Shown: piece by piece, positions 9,729 through 62,607 of the stretch
Layout: the number at the start of each line of letters is the position of its first letter
How positions within the stretch are numbered: position 1 is the stretch's first letter
Assembly: GCA_946965045.2 (NCBI GenBank)
Contig: OX337239.1
Location: 3,100,001 to 3,164,000, forward strand
DNA from: Epithemia pelagica
Taxonomy: Eukaryota; Protista; Bacillariophyta
DNA length: 64,000 nucleotides
Reading direction: 5' to 3'
Notes under the pieces: model-generated
The model's database searches: none
Told to the model about the DNA's origin: nothing
What the model saw: only the letters and a program-made list of their open reading frames with translations
Translations under genes and position numbers: made by a program

Positions 9729-10916
9729 ATGACCACGACACTGAAAGAACAAGCATGGCAGTCGGACCTTGTCCTACCGGACGACACAGCAGAATGGGAT
9801 GAAAACGATTGGCCTGCTTTTCTGGGAGGAGCGCGAGAGTATCATGCTTCGGTCGTACTTGACCATCCCGAGACGGAAAACGATAGCAACAACAGGGGGC
9901 AGACGGTCGTCGTGTTGGGAGGATATCAAACAGGCCAAGGCGAGCTCAATTCCATTCTGTTATTGAATCTGGCAGACCAAAACAAGCAGTGGCGAGAAGG
10001 GCCACCCATGAACAAGAGACGTGCTGGACATGCCACTGTTGTGTGCAACGGTCGCGTCTACGTCATGGGCGGATTCAATCGAGTAACTTTGGATTGTATT
10101 GAACGAATCGATGCCAATGATTTGCTACAATCATCCTTAACAACAACCACCACGCATGAGAGTCATTGGACGACATTGACATGTCGATTATCGACGAGAA
10201 GAAATGGATGTTGTGCTGTTGCGGTGCATGATCGATACATTGTTGTAATGGGTGGCTGTTACAACCATCGCGATTTGTCGTCGGTGGATATTATTGATAC
10301 CAACAATCACATTGTCACTGCTGGACCAAGCATGACTGTTCCTCGATCATACTGTGCCAGTGCGGTGATTGGACACCGCATCTTTGTCGTTGGAGGTTGT
10401 TATGGGCATGCCTTTCTTGACTCGGTGGAGTATTTGGACTATGCAACACCCTGTGACAAGGATGCGACAAAAAAGGAGATAGGCTCGGCGTCCATTTCTT
10501 TCTCAGCCACCTGGACCACTCATTTGGAGTTGAGGCTTTCCAATGGACGAAGGTCTTGTGCAATGGTTGCCGTCGGATCCTGTCTGACTGTGGCGGGAGG
10601 ATGGGACAATTCAACTGTGGAAGTTTTGGATACGCACCGCATCCGCGTTTGGAATCTCGCTGGAGTTCAAGAACAACGTTGGGGCTGCAGTATGGTGACT
10701 GTTGCCAATCATGTTGCCGTGATTGGTGGATGGGACAATCCTACCTGTGCGACATTTCCACTACTGGATAAGCATACTTGGTGTTTTCGTTGTCTCTGTG
10801 AGCAGCCTCGGAGGGAATGGTATTATTGTCCAGAAAGATCGGGTAACGAAGATGTTAGTGAAATAGCCTGCACCATCTCGACATCCGCTCTTAAACGATT
10901 GAGGACCAATACATGA
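9729..10916 (+). CDS. Kelch-repeat protein, copy K1 (six blades)
   Basis: Starts MTTTLKEQAW at ATG 9729; the longer ORF-finder start runs through transposon/LTR DNA. Six GG-containing kelch motifs (VVVLGG, VYVMGG, IVVMGG, IFVVGG, LTVAGG, VAVIGG). Confidence 0.9.
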   Translation: MTTTLKEQAWQSDLVLPDDTAEWDENDWPAFLGGAREYHASVVLDHPETENDSNNRGQTVVVLGGYQTGQGELNSILLLNLADQNKQWREGPPMNKRRAGHATVVCNGRVYVMGGFNRVTLDCIERIDANDLLQSSLTTTTTHESHWTTLTCRLSTRRNGCCAVAVHDRYIVVMGGCYNHRDLSSVDIIDTNNHIVTAGPSMTVPRSYCASAVIGHRIFVVGGCYGHAFLDSVEYLDYATPCDKDATKKEIGSASISFSATWTTHLELRLSNGRRSCAMVAVGSCLTVAGGWDNSTVEVLDTHRIRVWNLAGVQEQRWGCSMVTVANHVAVIGGWDNPTCATFPLLDKHTWCFRCLCEQPRREWYYCPERSGNEDVSEIACTISTSALKRLRTNT

Positions 10917-12634
10917 TGGAGGATGGCACTTGAAATGTTCAACAGGTTGCACGGCCATGAGCTTGGCAACTATATCATGACCATTATACTATCGTACAAA
11001 ACAGGACATCGTGTCCATCCTAAGTTACGCTGTGAATCATTTAAGATTATGAAAAGCTCTAAATCACTTTAACCATGCACGAGTGGCTTGCTCTGTCGAA
11101 AAAGACATTACTCTAGTTTTACTTTAGACTGCTTTCAAAAAGCAACTCCTAGTTTGGTTTGAAGGCTCCACCTTCTATAGAAGATGACCGCACATGAATT
11201 TCCTTCTGACGCCATGGCGTTTGTGGCAGTCGGATCCATGCACCATGGTGAGCAATCGTGTAGTAGATAATGAGATGTCTGCAAACCTGCGGATATCTGG
11301 CAACCACACTTGGATGAATGGCCATGGTACCGTTTCCTCGTGCTGTTGAATACTCTCTGGTCTTGATCAGAATGAATCATCTTTGAATGGAAGATGACAG
11401 TCTTTCATGGTCTCGTTTCAACTCTAAGGCAAAGAAGAAGCGGCCTGAATTGTCTCTCTTCAAGTGATGGCATATAAAGAACAAGTGACGTTTCGACCAT
11501 GACCTGATAGTTGTGGGACAGTCGGTGGGGCCATGCATTGGTAGCAACGGCGGGATCCCACAGCCAACACAGTTTGTCTTCGTTTTGTTTCCGTTGCGAT
11601 GGTAGCAGTGCAAAGTATACTTCCCCTGTTGCAGGCAGGACAAGTTTATCGTGGGTCGTCGTCGATTCCTCGTTCTTGGTGTCAATGTCTCGTTGTGGAG
11701 CAACCAATCCGTCGACGCGGTACAAATATTGGTGGTGTGCTACAATTCCCAAGACTGTGCTTCGGGTGGACCTTGTTCCAACAAGGCAACTGTTTTGGAA
11801 GTCGTCATTTGATCCACCCATTGTGATGATGATGCATCGATCGACCTGTTGTGCAAGCGACGATTGTTCTTCTTGTTGTTTGGCTGCTATTGGCGGATCA
11901 GGAAGCGCGATTTTTCACTTCTTGTCATGATCCTTGTTGAAAGAGACGGACGATTGTTACAGTGGTGTTGTTCGGATGGGTCAAGGCGAATGTTGTTGTC
12001 ACTGTTGTCCACTTCTGATTGTTCTTTGTAGAAATCGAGCATGGGTGGTTGCTACTTCTGTACTTTTGTTTTGTTATTGGGCGTGGAAGTGGGGAAACCG
12101 ACAAGTTTTACACACCACTCCACCAAGGCAATATTTTTACAGCAGAATGAGCAAGCGACAAAAAAGCACAAGCGAGGCCCCAACAAAGCCTTGTCACAAG
12201 CAGGACAGGAATGTTGATTGATTGTTCATTGTCAAGGCTGGCCTCTCTTATGTATCGTGAAATCTTTATCTAGTTTCACTCTTTTTGGCTGGAGGTCGTT
12301 TTGACGTAACAAAACTCCTGTACGTTCTCGACGCAACAGGTGGATTCAAGCGACAACTACCCCGGTCCACCTTTTGTTCCTTGCACTGTTGTGGTTTTCC
12401 ATCGAGACGACAACGTCACCCACTGGCAAATATAGCACCGGTCCCTTGGTGAACAGAGGCATCACGTCTGCCACAATCATTGGACCACATACGCGAGCAT
12501 TATACTGACAACCGGCGGAGACAGCACGAGACGGTTTTGGCTCTCCCAAAAAAACGATGATTGATGGAGTCGGTATCAATCATGACATAAGGGACCAACC
12601 TTTCCGGTCCAACCACATCCACGTGACATTCTCG

Positions 12635-13205: not shown

Positions 13206-14342
13206 ATGACAACGACACTGCAAAAGCAAGCATGGCAGTCGGGCCTTGTCCTGTTAGACGAGTCACCTGAATGGAATTTCGAGCACTGGCCTCCTCTTGT
13301 GGGTGGATGGCGTGGAGGTCATACCTCGGTCGTACTGAATCATACCGATAACAACCAAGAACAAACCGTCGTCGTGTTGGGTGGACATCGAACAGGTCAA
13401 GGCGAGCTAGATTCCATTCTTGTATTAAACTTGGCAGAATCAAACAAGCAGTGGCGCGAAGGGCCACGCATGAACCAGAAACGTGATGGACATGCCGCTG
13501 TTGTGTGCAATGGAGGCATTTACGTGATGGGAGGAGACAATGGAGCACCTTTGGATTGTATCGAACAAATTGATGCCAATTATTTGCTGCATTCACCTTT
13601 AACAACAAGCAACAAACATGAGAGGCATTGGACAACATTGACATGTCGGTTATCAACGCCACGATGGGGATGTGGTGCTGTCGCGGTTCACAACCGATAC
13701 ATCGTTGTATTGGGTGGACGCAGCAATCGTTATTTGCCGTCGGTGGATATTATTGATACAAACAACCACCTAGTCACTGCGGGACCATCCATGACTGTTC
13801 CACGAGCATGGTGTGCCAGTGCGGTCATTGGACACCGCATCTTTGTCGTTGGAGGTTGGAACGAGCATGGTCGTGTTGACAATGTGGAGTATTTGTACTA
13901 TGCAACACCCTGTGACAGTGATGTGACAAAAAAGGAGATAGGCTCGACATTCATCTCTTTCTCATCCACCTGGACCACTCATTCGGAGTTGAGGCTCTCC
14001 AATGCACGAAGTTCTTGTGCAGTGGTTGCCGTGGGATCTTGTTTGGTTGTGACGGGAGGATGGGGCAATTCAACCGTGGAAGTCTTGGATATTCACCGCA
14101 ACCGCGTATGGAATCTCCCACCATTTGGAAATCACCGTGTGGGCTGCAATATGGTGACTGTTACAAATCACGTGGCCGTGATTGGTGGATGGGAGAATCC
14201 CTCCTGTACAACATTACCACTCCTGGATAGGAATTCGTGGTGTTTTCGTCGACTTTGTGAGCAGCAGCCCAATGGATGGGAGCATTCTCTTGAAGGCACG
14301 GGTATCCGAGACGCTGATATCTCACGCTTCTTCAACTCGTAA
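13206..14342 (+). CDS. Kelch-repeat protein, copy K2
   Basis: Open paralog of K1 with the same six-blade pattern; ATG at 13206. Confidence 0.9.
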   Translation: MTTTLQKQAWQSGLVLLDESPEWNFEHWPPLVGGWRGGHTSVVLNHTDNNQEQTVVVLGGHRTGQGELDSILVLNLAESNKQWREGPRMNQKRDGHAAVVCNGGIYVMGGDNGAPLDCIEQIDANYLLHSPLTTSNKHERHWTTLTCRLSTPRWGCGAVAVHNRYIVVLGGRSNRYLPSVDIIDTNNHLVTAGPSMTVPRAWCASAVIGHRIFVVGGWNEHGRVDNVEYLYYATPCDSDVTKKEIGSTFISFSSTWTTHSELRLSNARSSCAVVAVGSCLVVTGGWGNSTVEVLDIHRNRVWNLPPFGNHRVGCNMVTVTNHVAVIGGWENPSCTTLPLLDRNSWCFRRLCEQQPNGWEHSLEGTGIRDADISRFFNS

Positions 14343-14767: not shown

Positions 14768-15679
14768 ATGGTCCTTCCTCGAAAGATGACAATGGGTCGA
14801 GTTTGGATAGAAGTAAGGAGGGAGGACCGTATCATATCCAATTCCGACATGATGGCCAAGAACAGGTTGTCCCTTTCAGGAGAGTCTCCACGCTCCAATC
14901 GCAATGCCTTCTTCCACCTGCTGTTGCATGTGAATCGCAATACGTTGCTGCACTTGTCATGTGATGTCAAGCCGGAATGGCCCAATGAAGATGACGAGTC
15001 CAAGAGGAACCCACCAAATCAGATCGAGGGTCGTCCCAATTGTCGCAATGGACCAGAACGAAAACAAGGAATCGAGTCTCGACGTTGCGACGAGACAGAC
15101 AGGACACCTCCCCCCACCACTACTTTCTGTCGCAGCATTGCTCGTTCAATTGCTCATGCCTGGAAACATGCCGCTCCCCATCGCGATGTCTTGCCCCTCA
15201 ATGCCAGTTCCGTCGAAACCTTGTTGCACAATTACGACAACACTATCGAACAGCATCAGTGTTGGACCTCGACCACTACATCCTTTGTGCCGCGCACCGA
15301 ACTCAGCAGCAGCACCAACAACACAACCACGACAACGAATGCCGCAGGTCATGTCTTGGTCATTATGGAAGCCTTGCCACCCCCACCGTATAAATGGATG
15401 GTCGTGTTGGAACACGAGTCGCCCGAGGCGGTTGTGTGGTCGAATGGTTTTGCTCGTCGGTGTCGGAATGGCGAAATTCGTGTGTCTGCTTCTTGTTTAT
15501 CGTGGAATCGCCCGACCATCTGTGGCTCGCTTATCACACTGATCGGGTGGAAAGTGGGTCGCTTCGACCTTTGGTGCAATCACCACAACGCTGTCCCTGG
15601 TGTGCACCAGACACCAACACGCTATGTATCAACCACTCATGTGTGTGGCTTCTGTGGTCGCCCCAGCCAATCCTGTTAG
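14768..15679 (+). CDS. Hypothetical ORF overlapping a repeated spacer module
   Basis: 303-codon ORF with a non-ATG ORF-finder start. It includes the VLPLNASSVETLLH segment that recurs, disrupted, near 29.9, 39.2 and 55.75 kb. No recognisable domain. Confidence 0.25.
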   Translation: MVLPRKMTMGRVWIEVRREDRIISNSDMMAKNRLSLSGESPRSNRNAFFHLLLHVNRNTLLHLSCDVKPEWPNEDDESKRNPPNQIEGRPNCRNGPERKQGIESRRCDETDRTPPPTTTFCRSIARSIAHAWKHAAPHRDVLPLNASSVETLLHNYDNTIEQHQCWTSTTTSFVPRTELSSSTNNTTTTTNAAGHVLVIMEALPPPPYKWMVVLEHESPEAVVWSNGFARRCRNGEIRVSASCLSWNRPTICGSLITLIGWKVGRFDLWCNHHNAVPGVHQTPTRYVSTTHVCGFCGRPSQSC

Positions 15680-16438: not shown

Positions 16439-19400
16439 TCAGTCGCTATTGGAAGGTTTGCGTCGTTTCCTTTGCCTTGGTGAAGGATCCTGGTCCGAGG
16501 TAATCTCATCTTCGTTGGACCGGCGCTCTCGTCTATTTGACAGGGCGAGAGCGTGTTTCTGATGAATTTTGAAACAAGTGACTGCCTTTTCTGCAACCAC
16601 CTTGACGTGACCAACCAACTGTTTGTATCTGGAATCTGTTCCGTTCAAGTCCATAGTAGCAACAAAAACAAGACATTCGCTTAGGTCGAGTTCAAGAAGT
16701 CACACATGAATTATTCCTGCCGAAATTTGCGCTGCAACACTTACCATACACATTTTCGCCAGTGATTTCACAAATTTGCATGGTTGGTAGTTGGGTTGGG
16801 AACAGACCACTGAAATCATCAAGCCACTTGTTGGCGCTTCTACTAATAGGTCTATCAATTGGGTTCTTTGGCGAAACTAGAAGTGACGCACTCGCTGTAG
16901 CGGGAGAAGACGGGAGGACCCAATGACATCCTGGAAAGGCATCCACAATCACTCGACTGACACCCGTCCAGGGGCAAACAGTCTCGTTCCGCGCCAAAGC
17001 ACACAATAGCTCAGCAATACACCATTTCTTTTGAACATAGTGTGTCGATGTCACACAAACCACAACTCGCGCTGTAAGAGCGTTCGTCAACATGGTAACA
17101 AGCGGATAAGATTGGTGTCCGGCATGCATTGTTTTTTCTGCCACAAAGATATTGAGTATGTTGCCACCACCAGCCGCGATTTGCAACTGATCCTCCAAAC
17201 TGGTCACATAGTCAAACTCGAGCTCTTTTCGAACTTCCCCGGCAAACGAAATGAAAACGTGGTATTTTGGTTTTTGGTTTGCAGAAGGAACCTTGTCGAG
17301 CATCATCTTTGCCAAATCGATTCCACATGACATAATATCTTGAACTGTCTTCAATCTTTGAGGATTCAACTGTTCCAGGTCCTCTTTTCCTGATGTCATC
17401 TGAAGTCGGAGCGTATTAATCCTTCCACGAGCGTCAGATACTTTTAGGAGGCGCTTGCCAAGCTTGACAAAGCTCATTGAAGACATTGAATCTAATTCGA
17501 CGATCAGCGTTGCACCATATTCAATGGCATGCCTGAGAATTGTATCCAAACACTGCAGTTTGTTACCGATTTGCGCAACAATTTCTCCCTGTCCGCTGCT
17601 GTTCATGGTAGCCGATGGCAATTGACAGTTGCTCTTGATGACTGTACTAGCTTCTTGATTGTTTGAGACCTCCGAGCGACCGGATGCCAACAACAACGGG
17701 CGGTTGGGCGACCTGTATTGAATTGATTCCCATGTTGGACTAGTATGTGTGATCCCTGCGACCGCCTGTGCTTCTAGGTGCGGTTGATTGCTATGGCTTA
17801 CATCATAGGTAAGCCAATTGACGTTCTTTTTTAATGCTTTCGAAACCTGTTTCATATCATGATCCGACATGTTCGTATTTCCAACATCAAACAAACGCCA
17901 CCCGGAATTTTGCTGCAATGCCGTGGACAGGGAAATCATGCCATCGTCTCCAACATCAGTATGTGCCAATCGCAAGTGTCGCCATGTCTTTGATGACGTC
18001 AGAGCTTGTAACAACGCACTGAGACCAAGATCGGACATGTTCGTGAACCCGAGATCAAGAGTATGCCACGATCGACGCGCGATACCCCAAACCAAGTCGA
18101 TCACTCCTTCACCAGTGACCATTGGCATGTTGGAAACGGAAAAACTTGACCACGTGGTGTTACGAGACAACGCTATTCCTAAATCATGTGCTCCCTGTTG
18201 GCTGATCTTGATATGAGACAGATTCATACAACGCCAATCACAATTGCTCTTCATCCCATTTACCAGCGCCTTTACACCAGGATCATCAAGATCCGAATTG
18301 GCCAGGTCCAAGATTTGCCAGTTTGTGTTCCTTTGCAACATCTCCGCAATGGCATTGGCTCCGTCCTCCCCAATGTCCAGATGACTCAACGACAAACGAA
18401 ACCAATGGACATTGCCTTTTGGTCTAGATCCAAGAGCGGCTGATGCTATAGAAGCATTGGTGCTGTCAATGTTCTCTGCCGTTGCACCATCACCTTGAAT
18501 TGACTGGATCAGTCCAAGGGCTGCTAGAAACGTCAACCGTGGCGTGTGGTGAAGTGAAATGGTTCGAGGAATGGTAAACGGTCGACCGACACGGAGTGCC
18601 TCGTTCGATGGCAGCATGCACAAATCCATGGATTGCCAGCATTGTCCCAAATACTCTGCCATTTCCAGGGCATCGGTTGCTTTTTCATGATTTGTGAGGA
18701 AGAAATTTGAAATTGTTTCTTCCGTCACTCCAATTTCGTCTGGATGGTTCTCTAGCAGAAAGGGCAGGTGCTGAATGGGGTTGTTGTTCGAGTATGGAAA
18801 CCAAAGCACCAATGAGTTCCAGTTTTTCTCCAACCGTTGGAGAATGGCTGGACCAACCTTGAGCCATGACCAAACTTCTTGACCTCGCACATGTAAAACA
18901 AACCGTTCCCAGCTTGGTGACGTTTTTAGTAGATTGGCCAACATTTCCACCCCTTGGTCGGGAGTGCCATAAGGGAGACTCAAAGCAAAATATTTCCAAG
19001 AGGTTTGTCGACGGAGAGCCTCGGCTAGTATGTCGACATGTGTTGCCTTTTCTAAATCCATATCAAACACTCGCCAGACTGAGTTGCCATGCAGTGTTCT
19101 GGTAACGGATCCCAGTCCTCCATCAAAATCAGAGGGAAATGTATAGCTAAACGTTTCCCAGCATTGATTGCAACGCAAGGCATGTGACAATGCTTCCATT
19201 TCACAGTCGCGGATCCTCGGAACCCGTGTACCAAATCGTACCTCAAGTTGGAAAGATTTCCATGTTTTGTTGACACTCAAGGCTTCAACCAAGGCTTTGA
19301 CTCCATTCACAGAAGAAAACTGTATGTCCCAGAGCTCGAAGTTGGTCCATTGGGTATTTTGTTGCAGTGCTTTTGCCAGTGCTTCAACTCCTTCATCTTC

Positions 19401-19973
19401 AAGGTTCGTACTAACAAGCTCCAACTCCTGCCAAACGTGATTGTTGCCCAAAGCACCAACCAGTGCTTTCCATCCACGCGATCCAAAATTGCAGTGCTGA
19501 ATAGACAACTTCTCCCAGGACGGATTTTGATCCATAGCATTCGCGAACCGAACCGCCATTTCGTCGTCCAGGGCTTTTACGAAATACAATCTCAGCTCAG
19601 GATCTCGGTTTGTTGTCGTTTTAACAAAAACACGGGCGAGCGCTTCAATGCCCACGTCACCGATATCCGAATGGCGGAGCGACAGCTTGGACCAATCCAC
19701 ATTAGCACGTCCTCTGCCCCTGACGTCTCTATCAAAATCGAGAATGGCTTGTGCAGTGCGGTCAGTGGCTTTGGTGTTGGTCAATCTTGGCAAAAACGGT
19801 TCTTTCCCAAAGTGCTCCACCATTCGTTGTTTCATCTTGGGGCTGATCCGGGTACGTCGCAATTGATATGGATCGCATTCGTTCATTTCAGGGTTGTTTA
19901 CGTCCATTGTCGTTTCTGGAAGAGGCATGGTGCGGTCCATTGGCTCGTTGAGGTCGAAAGTCGTTGTTGTCAT
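16439..19973 (-). CDS. LRR-TIR protein (RNI-like LRR blocks, helical linker, C-terminal TIR domain, basic tail); two exons
   Basis: 1093-codon ORF 19973-16692. Repeats such as LSHLDIGEDGANAIAEML-NTNWQILDLANSDLDDPGVKAL. TIR motifs YHVFISFAG, IFVAE, VVVCVTSTHYVQKKWCIAEL. Predicted intron 16744-16636 (GTAAGT...CTAA...CAG, phase 1 at both ends) joins ENVY to DSRYKQ...RQRKRRKPSNSD, stop at 16439. Confidence 0.85.
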
Positions 19974-21179: not shown

Positions 21180-21790
21180 CACAATTTGAGTGGAAGAAGG
21201 AGGGGATGCCGTGAAGCTGATGGGCGGTGGTCGAAGAGCCTTGCGAGTCGACAACACTCGGCAACAACAACAACAACCCAAAACCCAAACACACAACAAT
21301 CAACTACTCACTCCTCGCTGCCACCGAACGAACAACAACAACACTCGGCAACAACACTCGACAACGACACTCGGCGGCAAGACTCGGCGACAAGATGGTG
21401 TGGTCGTCCTCCTTCTTCTACCTTGCGACGAAACAATCAACTCCTCGTCTTTTCGTTGCCCTCACCCAACAAATCGAAGCCTCGTCCACTGGTGGTAACA
21501 AGCGACGACAACGACAACCACAAGCGGCTCAACTACAAATGGCGAAACAATCGGCGACGATGTCACAGCTGATCGATCGAATGAACGAAAGAACGAAAGA
21601 ACGAATGAACGACAACAACAACACTCGGCGACAACAAAAATCCAAACACAACAATCAACTACTCACCGCCACTGATCGAACGAACGAACGAATGAACAAA
21701 CAACAACAAAAACAACACTCGGCAACAACAACAACCCCCACGCAACAATCAACTTTTCGCTGTCACCGAACCCTCTGCCCGAGACTGTGC
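21180..21790 (+). repeat. CAA/CGA-rich degenerate tandem repeat region
   Basis: Recurrent ACAACACTCGGC, CACAACAATCAACTACTCA and (CGAA)n units. A similar composition resumes at 27110-27350 on the other side of LTR element 2. Confidence 0.8.
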
Positions 21791-21795
21791 CCTTC

Positions 21796-22549
21796 TAGCA
21801 GAACTCTCATTGAGAATTCAGAAGGGTAATAGGTAGTTGGGTAAAAGGCTCGCTGAGCCGACAATCGAATCACCAACCGATACAACAATCCTCCACGGGT
21901 CAGAGAAGAGTTGCAAGTCGAAGTCCGCCGTGGGTGGGGGCAGTCGGTCCACTGATAAGAGGTAAGTCTTAAGATGAGTGTTAAAATGGTGATATTAATG
22001 ATTGTGAGACGATTACTAACTAAGGTGGTTGATGGTGCCGAAGTCCTGGCTCTTGTATACGGCCATGGATCTGGTGTGATAGGTCCTCACTGGTTGGAGT
22101 AGACCGGCATTGGTGTATATTGAATGTATAGGGTGATGGATAACATGTATGGGATGCAACAGCTCTTGCTTTGTCGTGGTATAAGTCTTGTGCTGGGCGC
22201 GTTGCTGTTTGCATTCTTGGATTAGTGGGAACAGAGATATGGTCTCGCGTGATCGTGATTCGTGCTTTGATTACATAGACCGTTAGGTCGAATCGTGGAT
22301 GCGCGTACTCGGATAGTCAAGGCGCGCATTCGATGGTTTTGGGCGCGCACGTGTTGGGCCATAGTTAATATCCGAGCGGTCGCCAATAACACGTGCAATG
22401 CGAGCATGCCATGGCCAAATTTATAGTTTCGCGAGCATGCCGACATTCCTTTCTCACTATTAGGAAAATGTCATCGGATGCCATAAAATACTAGCATCAT
22501 TCGATGAGTTGTAGGTTTCGCCACCTAGCTTTCGGTGAGAATCCTAACA
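21796..22549 (-). repeat. 3' LTR of element 2
   Basis: Direct repeat of 26356-27109. Confidence 0.92.
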
Positions 22550-26335: not shown

Positions 26336-26355
26336 GAGCGATGAGACTGTTAATC
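26336..26355 (-). promoter_or_regulatory. Primer-binding site of element 2, complementary to a tRNA-Asn(GUU) 5' half
   Basis: The plus strand reads GAGCG-A-TGAGA-CTGTTAA-TC against the LTR: loop CT-GTT-AA with TC pairing back to GA. Confidence 0.7.
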
Positions 26356-45837: not shown

Positions 45838-45979
45838 TATCATTTTCGGGATGGAATGGATATCGGACATGCTCATATTTCACCCTTCTGTTTTCGTCGA
45901 CTCTGTGAGCAGCAGCTCAACGGATTGTATCATTTTCGGGATGGAATGCACCCTTCTCCTTCTCGACATCGGCTCGTAA

Positions 45980-48497: not shown

Positions 48498-51400
48498 ATG
48501 AAGAAACTGACGGACGTGTTTGCATCGAACCAACAACGCCAGTCTCCCCTCAAACAGAAGGAGGCCGTCCAGCAGCAAGCGATGTACACTTTCTTTGTCC
48601 CTTCTCCTGATAGGAAAAGGAAGGCAAGTGACAACGACTTGAAACCGAAAGCAAAGAAGCTGAAACCACCCCCACAGGAGCAGATGAATCTTCAACCACC
48701 ACCTCCACCACAAAATGGCGGCAGTACAAATGACCCAATTGTTTTGGATGATGCAGATATGGTTCCTGTTCAGGGTGCTCCAGAAATGGATGAATCCGAA
48801 ATGAACAGGAACCTCTCTGTGAATCAGATGGAAGTAAATGAGACCGAATCTCCTCCCACTGGTCCTCCCCTTGTTGCCTCGAATGTCGCGGCTGGAGTAA
48901 CAGATACAACGCTTCCACCAATGGCAATGCCAACAGGTTCCCTTCTTACCATCGTTGAAGGGAGCTTGAGTGGAGATGACAGTAAAAAAAAGAAAGGAAT
49001 TCCTGAACCCATCAGTATAGTTGCGGAGTTCATTTCAAAGATGTCGAAAGAGGATTTGGACTTGTGGTTTCCGCCCCATAGTGTCAAGTTTGTAATCCCC
49101 AATGACAAGAGCTACGGTAGACCACTCAACCCCCTCTACCATTCAGTCGAGGGTACGTCCCTTTATCATGTTCACTGGGAAGCCCATTTCCCCAATATCA
49201 AGATCCTTTGTCCGGATCCAACCTGCGACGGAGGGATGCTGAAACAAGATCGGACAAATTATTCCAAGAATAAGACTTTGATGCCCTTGTTTAATATGAG
49301 CGGACCGCCATCGTGGTGCATAGTGATGTCGTATGTTTGTCAGACATGTGGGAAGCGGTACAATGGCAATGATGGTCGTGTGCTTCTCACGTTACCCGAG
49401 TACGTGCGTAATGCATACCCCGTGGAGCCGAAGTATGCTGGAGCGGGCAACTGCCATCTCGACCTCGACTGCTGTCATGTTGTGCAAGAGAATATGGTAA
49501 CGTACGGAAACGGCGAACAGCTTGCGCGATTGATTGCGAGCCGAGGAAGTAAGGACTACCTCCGTCGGTTCGCTGAGTATGTCTCTTTCATGAGCCATTA
49601 CAATGCTCACAGCGACAACCCAGTCACCCCTGCAGAGTATCCCAGCTTTGAAGAGTTCATGCCAACCATGCCCCCAGCTGGTGATACGATTCGAGATCTG
49701 TTTGATGAAGCTTGCGCTTTGAACCTTACACCTTATGGGGTAAGCGATCATGATCGGTGTGTTCGCGAGATGCAATCAGTTGGAACCAACGCTTTCTTTG
49801 CCCAAGACCATGCAATGGAGATGGTCAAGAACTACACCAAGAAGCTTGGAGCGGCGGCCGCTTGGGATACAGCAACCGAAACCGGTGAAATTGCTTCGGT
49901 TGTATTGACAGGAGGCACTGGGGTGGCTGATATTGCGCATGCCGCCGAGCAATTGGCCCGTCGACCACATTTCAATCCGGTTGCCATGTACAGTGACACG
50001 TACCCCGCTAAGGATGCCTTCTGGAAGATCTTGTTCGGTGCGGTACTCACTGGGCGACTCGGTTTGTACCATTTTCAACAAAGGATCATCAAAACGCTTC
50101 GTCAGGGCCACATCGATTATCATAGAGCTTTGCGAGAACTCTGCCATTGCATCTATGAGTGGGAGCCCGAAACGTACCAGGCATTGGTACAGACTCTTCG
50201 TGCAGGAAATATGGGTCGAGACAAGAAACCATTGTCTGATCAAGATATCCTTGACATCGAAATGTCCAAGGATTTCCGTAAGAAGTATGGAAAGTTCCTC
50301 ATGAAGAATATCAGGCCCCCTGATGTCATTCGACAGAAGCTTGAAGAATGGTTCTGTAATTACAAGGTTGACTCTTCCGATCCCATCGAACGACCTGGTC
50401 GCGGACGCCCCGATCCCATTACAGGAAAGAAGCTTTTCACCGTCGATACCAAGACCGCCGTGGAAGAGCAGAAGAAGAATGCGGCACATATTCAGGACAT
50501 TGTGCCTGTTCAGGATATGTATCGCGTTATCCCACCCACGAAGACGACTCGTCATGGTTTGGCCGAGTACAGTTCGTTGCGATGTTAATCGAAACTCGAG
50601 GGGTTCCATGATCGCCTTGCTCACTTCGGTAATGTTGGAATGCGTTCTTCCTTGTGCGACAATGTCAACTTGTTAGGTACAACAATGTACAACACGAGAA
50701 TCCGTCATCGGCTTCGTATGGCTGCAACACCAGTCGATGAACGGCCGAATGTTCCAGCATATTGGGCCAATAATCCCACATTTTACAACCATTCCGAGCT
50801 CGGTTACATCAACGATCTCGCGAAGGAGTCCGGATATCCAACAATTCCTTTCGAGTATGCTCGTGAGTTGCCTGAAGACAACGGCGAGCGGTTCTTTTCA
50901 GAGTATTGGATTCAGGAGCGAGCAAGGCAGGCTGCTTTCCAATCGTCTCCCTTAAATGATCGTTGTTACTGTGATCAGTGTGGAAATAATCCGGTTCCTC
51001 TTGTTCATGACAAGAAGAAATCGCCATTGCTCCCAAACAAGAATGGTCCATCTTCGAAGGAAGCGGACAGTGTTTGGTCCTCCCCTCTTATCGCGACACC
51101 AGTCAAATCGAAGAACGAAGAGACGCCCTCATCTGTGGATGTCGTTACAAAGGCTGTGTTTGATTCCTCCAAGAAGGCATCACCATCCAGTTCCTCCAAA
51201 AAGGCATCGTCCACATCCAGTTGCAATGATTCGTCTCCAACTTTGGTTGACCTGTCTCCTGTTCCTCTATCGCCGCAAAAACTGTCTCCTGTGAAAGCTT
51301 CCCCTGATATTCCAGGTTGGAGTAACCAGCTTTACTGCGTGCCCGCCCAGATGGAGGGTAGTCATCCGCCGTTCCTTGTTCCTCGAGGTGGTAACCCGAT

Positions 51401-53950: not shown

Positions 53951-55168
53951 ATGACCACGACACTGAAAGAACAAGCATGGCAGTCGGGCCTTGTCCTGTT
54001 AGACGAGACACATGAATGGAATTTGGAGGACTGGCCTTCTCTTGAGGGAGAAGGGCGTTATCGTCATGCTTCGGTCGTACTGAATCATACTGATAACAAC
54101 CAAGAACAAACCGTCGTCGTGTTGGGTGGATATCGAACAGGTCAAGGCGAGCTAGATTCCATTCTTGTATTAAACTTGGCAGAATCAAACAAGCAGTGGC
54201 GCGAAGGGCCACGCATGAACCAGAAACGTGACGGACATGCCGCTGTTGTGTGCAATGGAGGCATTTACGTGATGGGAGGAGACAATGGAGGTTCAGATTT
54301 GAATTGCATGGAACGAATCGACGCCAATGATTTGCTTCGATCATCTTTGACAACCACCACCACGCATGAGAGCAGTTGGACGGCATTGACATGTCGCTTA
54401 TCAACGCATCGATTTGGATGTTGTGCTGTTGCGGTTCACAACCGATACATCGTTGTAATGGGTGGCCATAACAACGATGGTTATTTGTACGGCCATTACA
54501 ACGATGGTTATTTGTCGTCGGTGGATATTATAGATACAAACAACCACACTGTCACTGCGGGACAATCCATGACTGTTCCACGACAATTTTGTGCCAGTGC
54601 GGTCATTGGCCACCGCATTTTTGTCGTTGGGGGGCAAAACGATGATGGCCATCTTGACTCTGTGGAGTATTTGGACTTTGCAGAGGAGAGAAAAGATGAC
54701 ACTTTGTCTACAGTCATTCCCTTTTCGTCTAGTTGGATCACTCATTCGGAGTTGAGGCTTTCCGAACTTCGAGGTTCCTGTGCAATGGTTGCTGTGGGAT
54801 CGTGTCTGGTGGTGGCGGGTGGACAAGGCCATTCAACCGTGGAAGTCTTGGATACGCGCCGCAACCGCGTTTGGAATCTCCCACCATTCGGAAATCGCCG
54901 CGATGACTTCTGTATGGCGACTGTTGCCAATCAAGTTGCCGTGATAAGTGGTTTTGGCAGTCCTACCTGTGCGACATTACCACTACTTGACAAGCATACG
55001 TGGTGTTTTCAACGACTCTGTGAGCAGCAGCCCAACAGATGGTGTCTTTTTGGGGAAGGAATGAATATCCAACATGCTGATATTTCACCCTTCTCGACCT
55101 CGACATCAGCTCATAAACGCGCAAGGCCCAATACACGCCGTGGTGATGAAGGGAAGGATGGAACTTGA
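53951..55168 (+). CDS. Kelch-repeat protein, copy K9
   Basis: ATG at 53951; open; carries a 9-aa loop duplication (HNNDGYLYGHYNDGYL). Confidence 0.9.
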   Translation: MTTTLKEQAWQSGLVLLDETHEWNLEDWPSLEGEGRYRHASVVLNHTDNNQEQTVVVLGGYRTGQGELDSILVLNLAESNKQWREGPRMNQKRDGHAAVVCNGGIYVMGGDNGGSDLNCMERIDANDLLRSSLTTTTTHESSWTALTCRLSTHRFGCCAVAVHNRYIVVMGGHNNDGYLYGHYNDGYLSSVDIIDTNNHTVTAGQSMTVPRQFCASAVIGHRIFVVGGQNDDGHLDSVEYLDFAEERKDDTLSTVIPFSSSWITHSELRLSELRGSCAMVAVGSCLVVAGGQGHSTVEVLDTRRNRVWNLPPFGNRRDDFCMATVANQVAVISGFGSPTCATLPLLDKHTWCFQRLCEQQPNRWCLFGEGMNIQHADISPFSTSTSAHKRARPNTRRGDEGKDGT

Positions 55169-57040: not shown

Positions 57041-57066
57041 GTACTTGTACTTGTACTTGTACTTGT
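57041..57066 (+). repeat. (GTACTT)n microsatellite
   Basis: About four tandem hexamers; the K2 paralogous region has a single related unit. Confidence 0.8.
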
Positions 57067-57537: not shown

Positions 57538-58692
57538 ATGACAACGACACTGAAAGAAGAAGCATGGCAGTCGGGCCTTGTCCTGTTAGACGATGAGACA
57601 GCTGAATGGAATTACCAGGACTGGCCTCCTCTTGAAGGTGAATGGCGTTCTCGTCATGCTTCGGTCGTGCTGAATCGTACCGATAACAACCAAGAACAAA
57701 CGGTCGTCGTGTTGGGCGGATATCAACCGGGGCTAGGCGAGCTAGATTCCATTCATGTATTAAACTTGGCAGAATCAAACAAGCAGTGGCGAGAAGGGCC
57801 GTCCATGGACAAGAAACGTGGGCATCATGCCGCTGTTGTGTGCAATGGCGGCGTCTACGTGATGGGAGGATACTCTGAAGGTTCATGTTTGAATTGTATC
57901 GAACGAATTGATGCCAATTATTTGCTGCAATCATCTTTGACAACCAGCATCACACACGAGATGAACTGGACGACATTGACATGTCGGTTATCAACGCCAC
58001 GATGGGGATGTGGTGCTGTCGCGGTTCACAACCGATACATCGTTGTAATGGGTGGCTACAACGGTCGTTATTTGTCGTCGGTGGATATTATTGATACCAG
58101 GAACCACACTGTCTCTGTGGGACCATCCATGAATGTTCCTCGATTTTGTTGTGCCAGTGCGGTCATTGGACACCGCATCTTTGTCGTTGGAGGTTGGAAC
58201 GAGCATGGTCGTGTTGACAAGGTGGAGTATTTGTACTATGCAACACCCTGTGACAGCGATGTGACAAAAAAGGAGATAGGCTTGACATTCATTTCTTTCT
58301 CACCCACCTGGACCACTCATTTGGAGTTGAGGCTTTCCAATGCACGAAGATCTTGTGCAGTGGTTGCCGTGGGATCTTGTCTGGTTGTTGCAGGGGGATG
58401 GGGCAATTCAACCGTGGAAGTCTTGGATACGAACCGCAACCGCATGTGGAATCTTCCGCTATTGGAAAATCCCCGAAATGGCTGCAATATGGTGACTGTT
58501 GCCAATCAAGTTGCCGTGGTTGGTGGATGGTTCAATCCTTCATGTGCAACATTACCACTAATGGATAGGAATTCGTGGTGTTTTCGTCGACTCTGTGAGC
58601 AGCCTCGGAACGAATGGTACGAGTTTCGGGATGGAATGGGTATCCGAAATAACCAAGGACCACGTGAAGCCCAACACATGTCATTACGATAG
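57538..58692 (+). CDS. Kelch-repeat protein, copy K10
   Basis: ATG at 57538; open six-blade paralog. Confidence 0.9.
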   Translation: MTTTLKEEAWQSGLVLLDDETAEWNYQDWPPLEGEWRSRHASVVLNRTDNNQEQTVVVLGGYQPGLGELDSIHVLNLAESNKQWREGPSMDKKRGHHAAVVCNGGVYVMGGYSEGSCLNCIERIDANYLLQSSLTTSITHEMNWTTLTCRLSTPRWGCGAVAVHNRYIVVMGGYNGRYLSSVDIIDTRNHTVSVGPSMNVPRFCCASAVIGHRIFVVGGWNEHGRVDKVEYLYYATPCDSDVTKKEIGLTFISFSPTWTTHLELRLSNARRSCAVVAVGSCLVVAGGWGNSTVEVLDTNRNRMWNLPLLENPRNGCNMVTVANQVAVVGGWFNPSCATLPLMDRNSWCFRRLCEQPRNEWYEFRDGMGIRNNQGPREAQHMSLR

Positions 58693-61512
58693 AGGACAGG
58701 ATGAGACACAGAAGTTTTGTCCTTTAACGGTCGTCTTGTTTTCTACATTCAATTGGAATCCTAGTAACTAATGGTAACTCATAAGTAGACAGAACATGTT
58801 GCCAGAGATAGAAGGTAGTCTGATGCGATTGCAGCATTGTAGATTGCACTTACTGGTGTCTTTGTTTGCTTGTTCTTGTCCACAACGTAGGGTTCCATTG
58901 TGCCTTGTTTCTTTCGTTTGTGTTTCTGCTATGAAACTTTTGCTGCGAACCGCGACCTTTCGTAGACCTGCTGGTTAATCCTATCGCCTATCCATGCCGT
59001 GTTCTGGCTGCGCCGCCGTGCCACTTGTCTTGGGTGGTGGGACACTTGTCTTGGTTTTTGTGCCGAATCAGCAATCGACCTTGGAGTATCGTTTTGATGA
59101 GCATCGAGCAGTCACAGTACGCAAAGCAACAACAGTACCATCACTGTTGGACGAATACTCTCACGGCCATTGTACATGCGAACGAATTATGCAGCAGTAG
59201 AGTAGAGTCCACAAGGAAGAAAATGTGAATCACGTCATGGCCGTTTTGGAATCATTGTCGCTGACACCACATGATATGAATCCTACAAAGACGATTCGAC
59301 AGAGGACGATCCACGGACAACTATCCACACAACGTTGAAGAAAGAGAGATTCGTGGTTTCAGAATAAGAGATTGAATCGAGACTTGGTCCACGCGTTCAT
59401 TGGCCGTCATCAACATCCGCTGTTGCAGTTGAAGCTAGTACGGAATGTCGATAGGCCGGTACACACCAACCCGCCATTCCGACTACAACAACGGTTCCAT
59501 GGTTTCGCGAAGTAACCGATGCAGAACGGAGTATATGGCTCTTCCTTGTCTATGACTGATGAGACACCATTGTCGGCCATTTCCTTGTTGTTGCAAAAAT
59601 CGAGCGGGCTCTCCTGTTTGTTGTGAATGCCGTAATGCCTGGTAAATCGAGTGAGCCACCGCACCATGTGCCGTTCACAGGAGCGTTATGGGTGTTGACA
59701 AAGTCTTTTGACCGTGTCGATTCAAATGACAAAATTCAAAATTGCCACAATGACCCTTGTGCATCAAATCCTTGACAAGGCCCGAATAGTGCGATTCACT
59801 CAACCGGTTCGCAATGTTGAGTTGCCCACATACACTGATGCGCCGCGAGTAAAATCCCACATCGACCAACGAAGCAATCGCAGTGGCACGGCTCCAGAAT
59901 TCAGAACGGCAACGGAACGGAGCAACCACCATCCACCACAGTGTCCCATCGGAATGACTTCCCATCAAGAGTTGTCGCATCTTTTTGCGCATATTTGCTG
60001 TCAGTAGAGTGGAGCGATTCGAACTTGAGGGTCCATACAAAACCTCTCGCGAATGACTTGCGCTCCTTGATCTGTGACTTGAGTGTTGATCAATCTTGGC
60101 AACCGCAATTCAATTGCCACGGATTGGACGAGGCCAATTGATGGTTGTTGTTATCTATCATCGTTTCCGGAAGAGACATGTGGGTCAAACTGTTCGATGA
60201 GAGGTCAAGTCGTCCTCGTCATCGCCGTCATCGTCGTCGATGTATAATGGAGCGCTGTCCCCAAAACGTGGGTGGGGATCCGGGTCGCATATGTGGGTCT
60301 GCTTTTGGTCTTGAAACTACTCATTCACTAATCCTCATGACCCAGCCCCCTGGGTCGACGTCGACGTCCTGCACCCACAATTTTGATGACAGTAGGAAAT
60401 ATTTCAAACGCTAGGATTGTTCCGTGGCGTCGACGACAATGAACGATGTCGACTGTGTGGGCAATCCACCAAAATCAGAACATGTGCACTGCGCAACTTT
60501 TCACAGCATTCGTATTACCGCCACACATCATGGATGCCATGACTTTGGACGCTTGTCCGTCTCAACCCGCCGATGCCGTGTAGTACTGTCCAATCATTCA
60601 AACAACAACTTCCTTCCCAGAGGATTCGCAAGCCTACCCATGTCTCCATCCACGGCCTGTGGGCAGTTTCGTTTCATCTCGTCGACTCGGTATGCGTAAG
60701 GAACCAACAACCAGACAGACTGGAGCCTTCATTGCATGGTTGTATATTCAACAACAACAACAACAACACATCACCTTCATCACTGTTACGGTCATTCTCC
60801 GTTGACGCTTCAAGGCCTGCTGCAACTGGATTGTCCTTTTTTGTCATCCTTCTTCTTGTTCGGTGCTACTAGAAGGACTCTTCTAGTCTCCCACTTTTGG
60901 TCCGCAAAGCCACATGGTGGCCAACTCTTCTTGATGGCACCCAGCAACAAATTGCTGTTCTATTACTAGAGGGGATTGGAAACAAACCTTGGTTGCAGGC
61001 AATAGGCATCCAGCCATTGGTGTTGTGCAAAGCGAGAAGATGGCGGAGGAGCACGCACATGCCCTATTGTTGTAATAAGCTAGTTCCCAAGGGCGTTTGG
61101 CAGGGCTCGGACAAGAGCGACGTATTGCTGGGGTTCTTTGCGAGAGGTACCACGAAACACCGTGTACTACTAGGACGACGCGTCCCGAAACTTACATGGC
61201 GACGAAACTGACCTGTGCCAGTACCACCACGACAACGACAGGTACCCGTTATGCTGGACTCTGACCATTGACCAGCAGCACTAGCAGGATGGAACAACAC
61301 GAGCAGTGACAACCACAACAGGTTGGTCGAAGCAACGGTCACGATTTGTATCGTGACAAAAGCTCCTACCTCTCTTTGGTCCATCCATTTCGTCAAGTCA
61401 GTCGTGGTTCCAGTCCGCACCCATCAAAATCACATGAGCAAAGCAAAACCACTAACCACTTACAAGACAGGGTCTCGATCCCCATAAATTCTGCAGTCAA
61501 ACCTTTGGAACC

Positions 61513-62607
61513 ATGAGCATGGCACTGAAAGAACAAGCATGGCAGTCGGGCCTTGTCCTTTTGGACGAGACAGCAAAATGGAATGAAGACGACTGGCCTC
61601 CTTTCGAGGGCGGAAGGCGAGAGGATCACGCGACGGTTGTACTTGATCATCCCGTTATGACTGACAATAACAACGACAAGGCACAAACAGTCGTGGTGAT
61701 GGGAGGATGCAAGAAAGGCTGGAATACTACCAATTCCGTTCTTGTACTGAATTTAGCAGCGCCGGAGAAGCACTGGCGAGAAGGGCCATCAATGAGCAAG
61801 GCACGTGATGGACATGCTGCTGTGGTGTGCAATGGAGGCGTCTACGTAATGGGAGGATACTCTGAAAGTTCATGTTTAAATTGTATCGAACGAATTGACA
61901 TGAAGGATTTGCTGCAATCATCGTTGACACCCAGCACTATGCATGAGAGTCATTGGACGACATTGACATGTCGCTTATCAATGGGACGAAAAGGATGTTG
62001 TGCTGTTGCGGTTCACAATCGATACATAGTTGTAATGGGTGGCTATTCCAACCATCGCCATTTGTCGTCAGTGGATATTATTGATACAAGGAACCACACT
62101 GTCACTGCGGGACCAAGCATGACTGTTCCACGACGATGGTGTGCCAGTGCGGTTATTGGTCACCGCATCTTTGTCGTTGGAGGCCAAAACAGTGACGATG
62201 AACTTGATTCCGTGGAATATTTGGACTTTGCAGAGGAGAGGCAAAACGACACTTTGTCTACAGTCATTTCCTTCTCATCCAGTTGGATCACCCATTCTGA
62301 TTTGGTGCTTCCGAACCCTCGAGCTTATTGTGCAATGGTTGCCGTGGGATCTTGTCTTATTGTGGCCGGAGGAAGCCGTCAAACCGTGGGAGTGTTGGAT
62401 ACGCACCGCAACCGCGTTTGGAATCTCCCATCACTCGGAAATGACCGCTTTGACTGCACTATGGTGGCTGTTGCCAATGAAGTTGCCGTGATTGGTGGTG
62501 GATTCAATCCTACCTGTGCGACATTACCACTACTGGACAAGAATGCGTGGTGTTTTCGTTGTCTCTGTGAACAGCAGCCCAACGGACGGTATCAGCTTCT
62601 GGATTGA
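61513..62607 (+). CDS. Kelch-repeat protein, copy K11
   Basis: 364-aa open six-blade paralog. Confidence 0.9.
   Translation: MSMALKEQAWQSGLVLLDETAKWNEDDWPPFEGGRREDHATVVLDHPVMTDNNNDKAQTVVVMGGCKKGWNTTNSVLVLNLAAPEKHWREGPSMSKARDGHAAVVCNGGVYVMGGYSESSCLNCIERIDMKDLLQSSLTPSTMHESHWTTLTCRLSMGRKGCCAVAVHNRYIVVMGGYSNHRHLSSVDIIDTRNHTVTAGPSMTVPRRWCASAVIGHRIFVVGGQNSDDELDSVEYLDFAEERQNDTLSTVISFSSSWITHSDLVLPNPRAYCAMVAVGSCLIVAGGSRQTVGVLDTHRNRVWNLPSLGNDRFDCTMVAVANEVAVIGGGFNPTCATLPLLDKNAWCFRCLCEQQPNGRYQLLD

Follow-up and report, generated by a model that had tools for sequence, protein, structure and literature searches.

The genes described here form a genuine cluster, specific to the lineage, that encodes diversifying binding proteins and looks like an immune locus. 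Within the window, by which we mean the complete 64 kb stretch of Epithemia pelagica DNA that was analysed, an array of kelch genes on one strand surrounds a single LRR-TIR gene on the other (Table 1). The best explanation that we can offer, and one that we put forward tentatively, is that these genes belong to two cytosolic families with diversifying binding surfaces, which most likely serve intracellular non-self recognition. Coupling of the kelch proteins to the TIR protein is no more than a possibility.

Table 1. Features of the window (positions in nucleotides from the first letter of the window).
Feature	Position	Strand	Description	Evidence
Copia LTR retrotransposon	2036-9443	-	100% identical terminal repeats	RVT_2 domain
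K1	9729-10916	+	Intact kelch-only gene, six-blade propeller	tblastn, Pfam
K2	13206-14342	+	Intact kelch gene, tail-to-tail with the LRR-TIR gene	tblastn, Pfam
LRR-TIR gene	16692-19973	-	1093 residues	Pfam LRR_6 (E = 4e-16), TIR (22.2 bits)
LTR-bounded retroelement	21794-26653	-	100% identical 300-nt ends; 1108-residue ORF at 22525-25851	
K3	28097-29282	+	Kelch pseudogene, 2-nt deletion near 28347	tblastn
K4	31901-33040	+	Intact kelch gene	tblastn, Pfam
K5	33484-34491	+	5'-truncated kelch copy without codons 1-67	tblastn, Pfam
K6	37521-38736	+	Kelch pseudogene, 2-nt deletion near 38088	tblastn, Pfam
K7	41289-42431	+	Intact kelch gene	tblastn, Pfam
K8	44743-45837	+	Intact kelch gene	tblastn, Pfam
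DUF6729/MULE-like transposase ORF	48498-50588	+		Pfam
K9	53951-55168	+	Intact kelch gene	tblastn, Pfam
K10	57538-58692	+	Intact kelch gene	tblastn, Pfam
K11	61513-62607	+	Intact kelch gene	tblastn, Pfam, AF2 model

Organization and turnover of the array

A tblastn search of the 64 kb window with K11, which is also the numbering reference for the family, recovers 11 kelch loci and no more, each of them on the + strand, and in every kelch ORF Pfam matches kelch families alone (E values of 1e-15 to 1e-39). The 11 same-strand, kelch-only paralogues of a preliminary description of this DNA are thereby confirmed, as is its single LRR-TIR gene in the opposite orientation. Eight of the 11 copies are intact, while K3 and K6 are frameshifted and K5 is truncated, so that the pseudogenes reported earlier are indeed present. 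Introns were ruled out as the cause of the split reading frames of K3 and K6: the HSPs abut or overlap, and in each gene a deletion of 2 nt relative to the paralogues, with nothing intervening, identifies a frameshift. K3 is head-to-head with the LRR-TIR gene, and the stop codon of K4 is separated from the start of K5 by 443 nt.

The transposon load that had been noted for the array also holds, as at least three insertions interrupt it. The Copia element ends about 290 nt upstream of K1 and forms the left boundary of the array in the window. The second retroelement sits between the LRR-TIR gene and K3 and is absent from a collinear locus elsewhere in the genome (L001); protein-language-model features (score 0.84) suggest that its ORF may be Blackbeard/Copia-like, which we treat as a lead only. 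The DUF6729/MULE-like ORF lies in the enlarged 8.1 kb gap between K8 and K9. The two LTR elements, whose ends are identical, are very young insertions.

The kelch coding sequences can be aligned in all 55 pairs of copies, the flanks in just 12-15 of the 55. Mosaic dS values among the paralogues indicate gene conversion, and the K11 region has a 98% identical copy on a different contig (L011). The best interpretation of the window is that it forms one part of a lineage-specific compartment with fast gene turnover, home to two families.

Fold and class of the kelch proteins

The kelch family comprises at least 520 database clusters at E <= 1e-3. The best 120 matches are 65-99% identical and are spread over many large contigs of a single assembly, the same one that contains the remoter members (38-57% identical); dispersed single-copy members are found among ordinary genes. 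The AF2 model of K11 (pLDDT 81.9) is a six-blade propeller of 24 strands that is closed by the N-terminal strand. Foldseek matches it to KLHL12 and Keap1 with E values of 1e-16 to 1e-17, and TM-scores normalized to the target are 0.74-0.83 for KLHL12, Keap1, KLHL20 and NS1-BP. Together with the Kelch_1 matches, which span the E-value range given above, the six-blade model places the proteins in the Kelch beta-propeller superfamily. The family is best explained as hundreds of stand-alone, cytosolic six-blade propellers.

No BTB, BACK or F-box domain is matched by Pfam in any of the 11 copies, which bears out the earlier observation on these two domain types (BTB and F-box). The kelch ORFs start about 35 residues ahead of blade 1, and a stop codon is found just upstream of K2. 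The proteins thus lack the N-terminal BTB/BACK region of the BTB-BACK-Kelch (KLHL) Cul3 adaptors, and neither the 11 copies nor the longer family members have the F-box of the F-box-Kelch SCF receptors. KLHDC2/3/10-type CRL2 receptors carry a BC-box and a Cul2-box C-terminal to the propeller. In the conserved C-terminal helix of the kelch proteins (residues 343-351) a Cys, a Phe and a Leu are invariant; inspection of this helix reveals no canonical BC-box and Pfam matches no SOCS-box. Neither a signalling nor an E3-docking domain is recognized in kelch members, the longer ones being made up of kelch domains only. The N- and C-terminal segments are conserved, as is the scaffold.

These folds raise the question of whether the kelch proteins are substrate receptors or adaptors in proteolysis or in some other process unrelated to immunity, for example mating, allorecognition or the control of endogenous regulators, with the LRR-TIR genes as unrelated passengers that were copied along with them. 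The nearest folds and Pfam families (KLHL12, Keap1, KLHL20 and KLHDC2-type) point this way, as do the dispersed single-copy members and a collinear segmental duplication that carries both genes (see below). We nevertheless consider such a role unlikely, given that BTB, F-box and SOCS/BC-box are not recognized and that it leaves unexplained why all examined LRR-TIR genes, even very old ones, stay in or beside kelch arrays.

Variability of the propeller top face

Hypervariable kelch sites were defined on 99 held-out paralogues. Of these 43 sites, 35 fall in the B-C or D-A loops, which make up the top face, and none in a strand. The variable positions directly follow each GG doublet in the B-C loops and flank, on both sides, the conserved Arg of each D-A loop. 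In Keap1/KLHL structures the pocket that binds the peptide is built from these two kinds of loop. The variable ligand-face loops of the preliminary description are thus recovered quantitatively.

All dN/dS values in this work, for kelch and LRR-TIR genes alike, were obtained by NG86 counting, a method that ignores recombination; for structural classes fixed beforehand they are 0.89 for the top loops, 0.27 for the strands and 0.38 for the bottom loops of the propeller. At the hypervariable sites the ratio is 1.5 (CI 1.0-2.2) in a set of 14 copies and 1.30 (CI 0.90-1.79) in a set of 23, the lower confidence limit across the two sets being 0.90-1.02. The remaining sites give 0.35 and the scaffold 0.27-0.36; dS averages about 0.39. 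Since the hypervariable sites are not cleanly separable from a ratio of 1, relaxed constraint stays compatible with the data. Positive selection on the ligand-face loops is therefore suggestive but borderline: the ratio is above 1 (1.30-1.50), but the confidence interval reaches down to 0.90.

A further possibility is that the tandem copies multiplied neutrally or selfishly through unequal crossing-over, in a region rich in transposons, with loop variability reflecting relaxed constraint and many copies in decay. This would agree with the borderline ratio, with three of the 11 copies already being broken, with the very recent transposon insertions and with a star-like kelch tree. It seems improbable to us: the scaffold is clearly under purifying selection, coding sequences were kept while their flanks decayed, and the bottom loops are constrained while the top loops are not, a one-sided pattern that would not be expected from a general loss of constraint.

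The LRR-TIR protein

The protein consists of about 20 RNI-type LRRs of 28 residues (residues 94-775), a helical linker, a TIR domain (residues ~901-1020) and a conserved C-terminal tail. Its family numbers about a dozen proteins in the genome. The match to the Pfam TIR model (PF01582) lies just above the gathering cut-off of 21.3 bits. In a PDB profile search TIR domains account for 13 of the 14 matches, including all of the best 13 (best E = 1.2e-3); feature-search neighbours are TIR/ThsB proteins and PADLOC TIR-type models match too. From these sequence comparisons the TIR assignment appears weak but consistent. An AF2 model of residues 780-1093, built from a ten-sequence alignment, has a pLDDT of 36.

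The domain keeps a putative catalytic-type glutamate, Glu988, in a W-C-I-A-E-L motif. HMMER aligns this residue with the catalytic Glu86 (E86) of Roq1, and its position corresponds to Glu642 (E642) of SARM1. It is invariant in ten of ten homologues, including that of Epithemia clementina, and the TIR domain may be of the enzymatic, NADase type. Across the paralogues the TIR domain shows dN/dS values of 0.15-0.39.

The two ends of the LRR domain behave differently. On the predicted concave face dN/dS is 1.95 in the N-terminal block (CI 1.09-4.28; four paralogues, 35 sites) and 0.18 in the C-terminal block, which suggests diversification at the N-terminal end. The preliminary description had cast the LRR-TIR protein as an executor. 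The catalytic-type Glu fits that part, but with an LRR surface of its own that seems to diversify the protein is not a plain executor.

Pfam finds no NB-ARC or NACHT domain in the 1093-residue protein, nor do the precomputed domains of its paralogues contain one; the central NTPase of NLR/STAND receptors is thus absent. No transmembrane segment or signal peptide is present, and the N-terminus lacks hydrophobic character; the maximum Kyte-Doolittle hydropathy over 19 residues (1.52) belongs to a stretch inside the TIR core. As a soluble protein with RNI-type LRRs, it falls outside the Toll-like receptors.

Linkage of the two families

Each of the eight LRR-TIR paralogues examined in the genome, among them one with a saturated dS of about 2, has kelch genes of this family at a distance of no more than 10 kb. 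At six of the eight loci the LRR-TIR gene and its kelch neighbour are divergently oriented. There are about 25-50 kelch genes for each LRR-TIR gene. The window and locus L001 are collinear, which shows co-duplication of both genes; L001 was ruled out as an allelic haplotig of the window, being just 78-88% identical, whereas the copy of the K11 region on L011 reaches 98%. After co-duplication, the two genes can be neighbours by descent without selection for their proximity, and duplication of array segments carrying both genes explains the linkage best.

In Epithemia clementina no kelch gene is found within 10 kb of the LRR-TIR homologue, and the homologue of the kelch genes stands alone, surrounded by ordinary genes and outside any array (loci L003 and L012). 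The conservation of linkage that the preliminary description had looked to therefore holds at every locus examined within the genome but fails at the two loci of the one other species examined.

In that description the kelch proteins might be sensors or adaptors and the LRR-TIR protein an executor. Taken as a direct two-component arrangement, the linked LRR-TIR protein would be the dedicated executor of the kelch sensors, whose conserved termini would dock onto the conserved C-terminal LRR face. Such a direct two-component system is consistent with the linkage at all eight loci, old paralogues included, with the conservation of both kelch termini and of the C-terminal concave face (0.18), and with the divergent orientation at six loci, although the last is a trivial outcome when one gene is inverted in a one-directional array. 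Several further observations make it doubtful. A dedicated lineage of partner kelch genes beside the LRR-TIR genes was ruled out, as the neighbours form no clade, and the large excess of kelch over LRR-TIR genes also speaks against the system. No fusion of kelch to a signalling domain was found, a search with the TIR region returning LRR-TIR paralogues alone; long multi-kelch representatives were rejected as fusions because they are unrelated proteins, for example subtilase-kelch fusions. Moreover, the families are unlinked in Epithemia clementina, and an LRR-TIR protein with a variable surface of its own needs no separate sensor. Of the earlier proposal of a variable sensor or adaptor repertoire, the pattern of a diversified binder stands, while selection is borderline and a partner clade is absent.

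Among the unlabelled sequencing runs of a single study, one that may be RNA, X4, covers K2 but contains hardly any of the LRR-TIR gene; the others look like DNA, and read depths, which were summed over contigs, are not expression values.

Discussion

In the reading that we favour, intracellular non-self recognition, the kelch proteins would be a variable binder repertoire of sensors, adaptors or baits. Their targets would be non-self proteins of viruses, parasites or bacteria, recognized inside the cell, and the LRR-TIR proteins would act as receptors whose TIR domains, by oligomerization and NAD+ chemistry, signal or kill. An immune function of the cluster is what we infer, and a physical interaction between kelch and LRR-TIR proteins may be part of it. 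A more specific and distinctly less probable version is a two-part intracellular immunity of this diatom lineage that dispenses with NB-ARC, where hundreds of free-standing, hypervariable kelch propellers capture pathogen proteins and a small set of LRR-TIR NADases responds. The conserved C-terminal LRR face would then read out ligand-loaded kelch proteins, with the variable N-terminal face contributing direct recognition, after which the TIR domain would trigger NAD+-dependent signalling or cell death.

Kelch domains of the KLHL/Keap1 and KLHDC2 types share the six-blade propeller with the array copies, in which variation is placed in the B-C and D-A loops. The array differs in its hundreds of tandem copies, which are devoid of BTB-BACK, F-box and any recognizable BC/Cul box. 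With plant TIR-NLR clusters the locus has in common tandem arrays, pseudogenes, gene-conversion mosaics, richness in transposons and apparently diversifying binding surfaces, solvent-exposed LRR positions among them, as well as the TIR Glu aligned with that of Roq1. In contrast to the plant proteins, the LRR-TIR protein has no NB-ARC/NACHT, carries its TIR domain at the C-terminal instead of the N-terminal end and has LRRs of the RNI type, and the commonest variable module is encoded apart from it, by the kelch genes.

The fungal HET-E/NWD STAND proteins (Podospora het) serve non-self recognition with WD40 propellers that are hypervariable on the top face and belong to rapidly exchanging paralogues. 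A beta-propeller with a hypervariable top face is the shared element; here it is a free-standing kelch domain, whereas the WD40 propeller is fused to NACHT and an effector domain.

Full-text searches of a library of papers turned up no account of kelch arrays or LRR-TIR clusters in diatoms. Elsewhere among microalgae, TIR genes of Gephyrocapsa (Emiliania) huxleyi are induced in virus-resistant cells and their products share the conserved catalytic Glu, but these are TIR-only proteins without LRRs, and no kelch arrays are reported with them (PMC12489294). In Brassicaceae and Poaceae, Kelch_1 is listed as one of the integrated domains of NLRs (PMC4759884). A role of kelch as bait or sensor module thus has a precedent, although the relation seen here is genomic adjacency and not fusion.

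The locus supplies concrete candidates, namely a binder family with about 40 hypervariable surface positions and a TIR protein with the putative catalytic Glu988, in a field where, to our knowledge, almost nothing is known of how diatoms recognize viruses, parasites and bacteria at the receptor level. If the immune reading is true, kelch would join LRR, WD40, TPR and ankyrin repeats as a variable scaffold for non-self recognition, and a major group of marine primary producers would possess a TIR-based receptor architecture that works without a STAND NTPase.

Organization of the kelch array

A tblastn search with K11, the rightmost kelch copy of the window, identifies exactly 11 kelch loci (K1–K11 from left to right). 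This is in agreement with the repeat finder, which returns eleven-member direct-repeat families with a spacing of ∼3.5–3.9 kb. Every kelch ORF matches only kelch-type families in Pfam, and no BTB, BACK or F-box domain is present on any of them. Eight of the 11 copies are intact, with ORFs of 362–405 codons. K3 and K6 each contain one 2-nt deletion relative to their paralogues; introns were rejected since the two frame pieces abut or overlap, and these are therefore frameshifts. K5 is without its first 67 codons and starts 443 nt past the stop codon of K4. The coding sequences are alignable in all 55 pairs of copies (mean 78.6%) and the 500-nt flanks in only 12–15 of the 55, over ∼170–200 nt.

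Mobile elements interrupt the array. The full-length Copia-type retrotransposon stops ∼290 nt short of the K1 start codon, on its upstream side, and inserted very recently, as its terminal repeats match each other at 100% identity for 240 nt or more. The second LTR-bounded element contains a 1108-amino-acid ORF without any Pfam match. By protein-language-model features (score 0.84) this ORF falls near polyproteins of the Blackbeard/Copia type, which serves only as a lead, and the element is possibly a divergent retroelement or a non-autonomous one. The DUF6729-type ORF sits in the 8.1 kb gap between K8 and K9, which is the sole enlarged gap of the array. The anatomy of the window (kelch loci, LRR-TIR ORF and transposable elements) therefore confirms the preliminary description in every element: eleven same-strand, kelch-only paralogues, pseudogenes among them (the frameshifted K3 and K6, besides the truncated K5), transposon insertion (the two LTR-bounded elements and the DUF6729/MULE-like ORF) and an LRR-TIR gene in the opposite orientation.

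Several shorter repeats are also observed. One of ∼470 nt is dispersed over non-syntenic positions in the window and in two other LRR-TIR loci (88–90% identical between loci), and in the window it overlaps an ORF without a Pfam match. Degenerate CAA/CGA-rich 16-nt tandem repeats flank the second LTR element between the LRR-TIR gene and K3, while a 188-nt direct repeat (96% identical) is found in two separate inter-kelch spacers.

Coordinates of features in the window and at related loci
Feature	Locus	Positions	Strand	Remarks
Kelch array, K1–K11	Window	9729–62607	+	
LRR-TIR gene	Window	16692–19973	−	
Copia-type LTR retrotransposon, full-length	Window	2036–9443	−	RVT_2; ORFs of 1409 and 691 aa
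Second LTR-bounded element	Window	21794–26653		300-nt ends 100% identical
DUF6729-type ORF	Window	48498–50588		696 aa; feature and structure neighbours MULE/Mutator/KDZ-like transposases
Dispersed repeat	Window	15198–15672		
Dispersed repeat	L002	14281–14731		
Dispersed repeat	L007	5333–5799		
ORF overlapping dispersed repeat	Window	14768–15679		303 aa
16-nt tandem repeats	Window	21260–21769, 27114–27241		
188-nt direct repeat	Window	35517–35704, 43455–43642		
K11 region	Window	61141–64000		
Copy of K11 region	L011	9628–12486		
LRR-TIR paralogue	L001	10001–13456		
LRR-TIR, split frame	L004	8665–12127		
LRR-TIR, split frame	L005	8916–12310		
LRR-TIR, split frame	L006	8964–12367		

Fold and variability of the kelch propellers

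Modelled by AF2 with 115 paralogues as input (pLDDT 81.9, pTM 0.84), K11 is predicted to fold as a six-blade propeller with N-terminal strand closure and a conserved C-terminal helix, and Foldseek groups it with the kelch domains of KLHL12, Keap1, KLHL20 and NS1-BP. The protein has neither a transmembrane segment nor a signal-peptide-like N-terminus. Column entropy over the 115 paralogues reveals twelve sharp variable patches. Six of these are the residues directly after each GG doublet, in the B–C loops, and six are the two residues flanking the conserved Arg right before strand A, in the D–A loops. In the structures of KLHL proteins and Keap1, the B–C and D–A loops form the peptide pocket.

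To guard against circularity, hypervariable sites (at least 2 bits) were defined on 99 held-out paralogues sharing under 90% identity with each copy available as DNA sequence. The B–C and D–A loops contain 35 of the 43 sites, the bottom loops six and the strands none, which bears out the variable ligand-face loops claimed previously. The kelch scaffold is conserved, and the strong variability is polarised towards the ligand face.

For structural classes set beforehand, the pooled dN/dS (NG86) is 0.89 in the top loops, 0.27 in the strands and 0.38 in the bottom loops; mean dS between copies is ∼0.39, and the comparisons are therefore unsaturated. At the hypervariable sites dN/dS is 1.50 for 14 copies (NG86; bootstrap CI 1.02–2.22) and 1.30 for 23 copies (CI 0.90–1.79, with 6.8% of bootstrap values not exceeding 1), compared with 0.35 outside this set. 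Crude NG86 counting thus suggests diversifying selection on the ligand face without demonstrating it; the interval for the larger set extends below 1. Neutral amplification with relaxed kelch loops is the explanation of the locus that we consider least probable.

The family comprises at least 520 database clusters at E ≤ 1e-3, the best 120 of which share 65–99% identity with K11 and are spread over many contigs (40 kb–1.7 Mb). All loci fetched from ENA belong to the single assembly ERZ21939226. The distant members (38–57% identity) also come from this assembly, two of them as singletons amid ordinary genes, and the only named relative found outside it is an Epithemia clementina protein with 39% identity. 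Many of the clusters formed at 90% identity consist of a pair located on two contigs. The assembly probably holds both haplotypes, and the haploid kelch count is therefore lower.

A copy of the K11 region, 96.5–98% identical, lies on another contig (L011), where the upstream sequence differs from the window in containing a Copia element and another kelch fragment. This copy is either the second haplotype, with extensive structural variation, or the product of a very recent duplication. Among sequencing data, three unlabelled runs holding window DNA are genomic-like, with continuous cover and records of 10–509 kb. The fourth unlabelled run (X4) covers K2 and the repeat at 14.8–15.6 kb and holds only 12% of the LRR-TIR gene words; the depths are sums over contigs and hence no measure of expression. 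Two biofilm metagenomes contain 7–10% of the sampled words of this gene, which suggests a biofilm habitat for the organism or a close relative.

The LRR-TIR protein

The LRR-TIR gene is a single uninterrupted ORF of 1093 codons. The protein has ∼20 RNI-type repeats of 28 residues each (aa 94 to ∼775), followed by a helical linker, a TIR-like segment (∼aa 901–1020) and a conserved Cys/His-rich tail; an NB-ARC/NACHT domain, transmembrane helix and signal peptide are absent. The TIR assignment, made from sequence, is weak but consistent in direction. The Pfam score for PF01582 is 22.2 bits, barely over the cut-off of 21.3, and AF2 gave no usable model of the region. With a ten-homologue profile, the best 13 of the 14 PDB matches are TIR domains (AT1G72930, Roq1, RPS4, L6, RUN1, RPV1, AbTIR, PdTIR and BtpA; best E 1.2e-3), the feature-space neighbours are TIR/ThsB clusters, and several TIR-type models are among those matched in PADLOC. 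Glu988 in the motif W-C-I-A-E-L is aligned by HMMER to Glu86 of Roq1, and all ten homologues, that of Epithemia among them, share this putative catalytic-type glutamate without exception.

The dN/dS of the TIR is 0.15–0.39. Surface sites of the LRRs were fixed beforehand as those residues of the LxxLxLxx strand that face the solvent. Their dN/dS is 1.95 in the N-terminal block (aa 94–340; CI 1.09–4.28; four paralogues and 35 sites only), where the remaining positions have 0.74, and 0.18 in the C-terminal block. The LRR-TIR proteins therefore appear to diversify on one LRR surface. Given this region-wise selection, the protein itself resembles a receptor and not just the executor that was proposed.

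Along the gene, dS between the window copy and its closest paralogue, that of L001, varies between 0.56 and 0.00, with values of 0.56, 0.13, 0.37 and 0.13 followed by ∼0.01 over the last ∼330 codons, which are nearly identical. Such a mosaic points to gene conversion or recombination involving loci on separate contigs. At L004, L005 and L006 the reading frame breaks into two ORFs around codons 320–330; these may be frameshifted pseudogenes or intron-bearing genes, and thus not every family member need be functional.

Linkage of the kelch and LRR-TIR families

Ten of the 11 LRR-TIR family proteins in the database come from the assembly of this genome, on contigs that also carry kelch members. 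Kelch genes of this family lie within 10 kb of the LRR-TIR gene at all eight loci examined (the window, L001, L002 and L004–L008). These include L008, whose LRR-TIR gene is distant from the window copy (dS ∼2, dN/dS 0.26), and both L004 and L008 are located at array edges adjoining ordinary genes. The LRR-TIR gene is inverted relative to the array, and thus head-to-head with one kelch gene, at six of these eight loci, a retroelement being inserted between the two in the window and in L002. Within this genome, the kelch family is constantly associated physically with the small LRR-TIR family.

Selection for this linkage is nevertheless disfavoured on three grounds. The window and L001 are collinear over the LRR-TIR gene (88% identical) and flanking kelch genes (78–82%), which were therefore copied together. 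The kelch copies adjoining LRR-TIR genes are scattered over a 35-copy nucleotide tree and form no partner lineage. The conserved linkage expected in relatives fails at the two loci examined in Epithemia clementina, where no kelch gene lies within 10 kb of the LRR-TIR homologue (32% identity) and the kelch homologue is a singleton amid ordinary genes.

Coupling of a kelch sensor to an LRR-TIR executor, as first proposed, has the linkage at 8/8 loci as its sole support; with no partner kelch lineage, and no kelch–signalling fusion among the family members and relatives searched, we regard it as unlikely. We find it just as doubtful that the kelch proteins are a non-immune adaptor family with the LRR-TIR gene as a passenger. 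Our preferred reading, tentatively held at somewhat below even chances, is that the cluster serves non-self recognition, because such a set of features typifies immune receptor clusters and because TIR proteins have been tied to resistance against viruses in a different microalga (PMC12489294).

In a full-text literature search, neither kelch arrays nor LRR-TIR clusters turned up as described in diatoms; some plant NLRs contain kelch as an integrated domain (PMC4759884). Diversifying receptor-gene clusters are already known, and we rate the kelch/LRR-TIR locus as a variant of these. It is unusual in that the variable module is a free-standing kelch propeller and the TIR receptor is without a STAND NTPase. 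The kelch genes form a lineage-specific multigene family that encodes cytosolic propellers, whose scaffold is conserved and whose canonical binding face is hypervariable, and that undergoes birth-and-death turnover amid very recent transposon activity.
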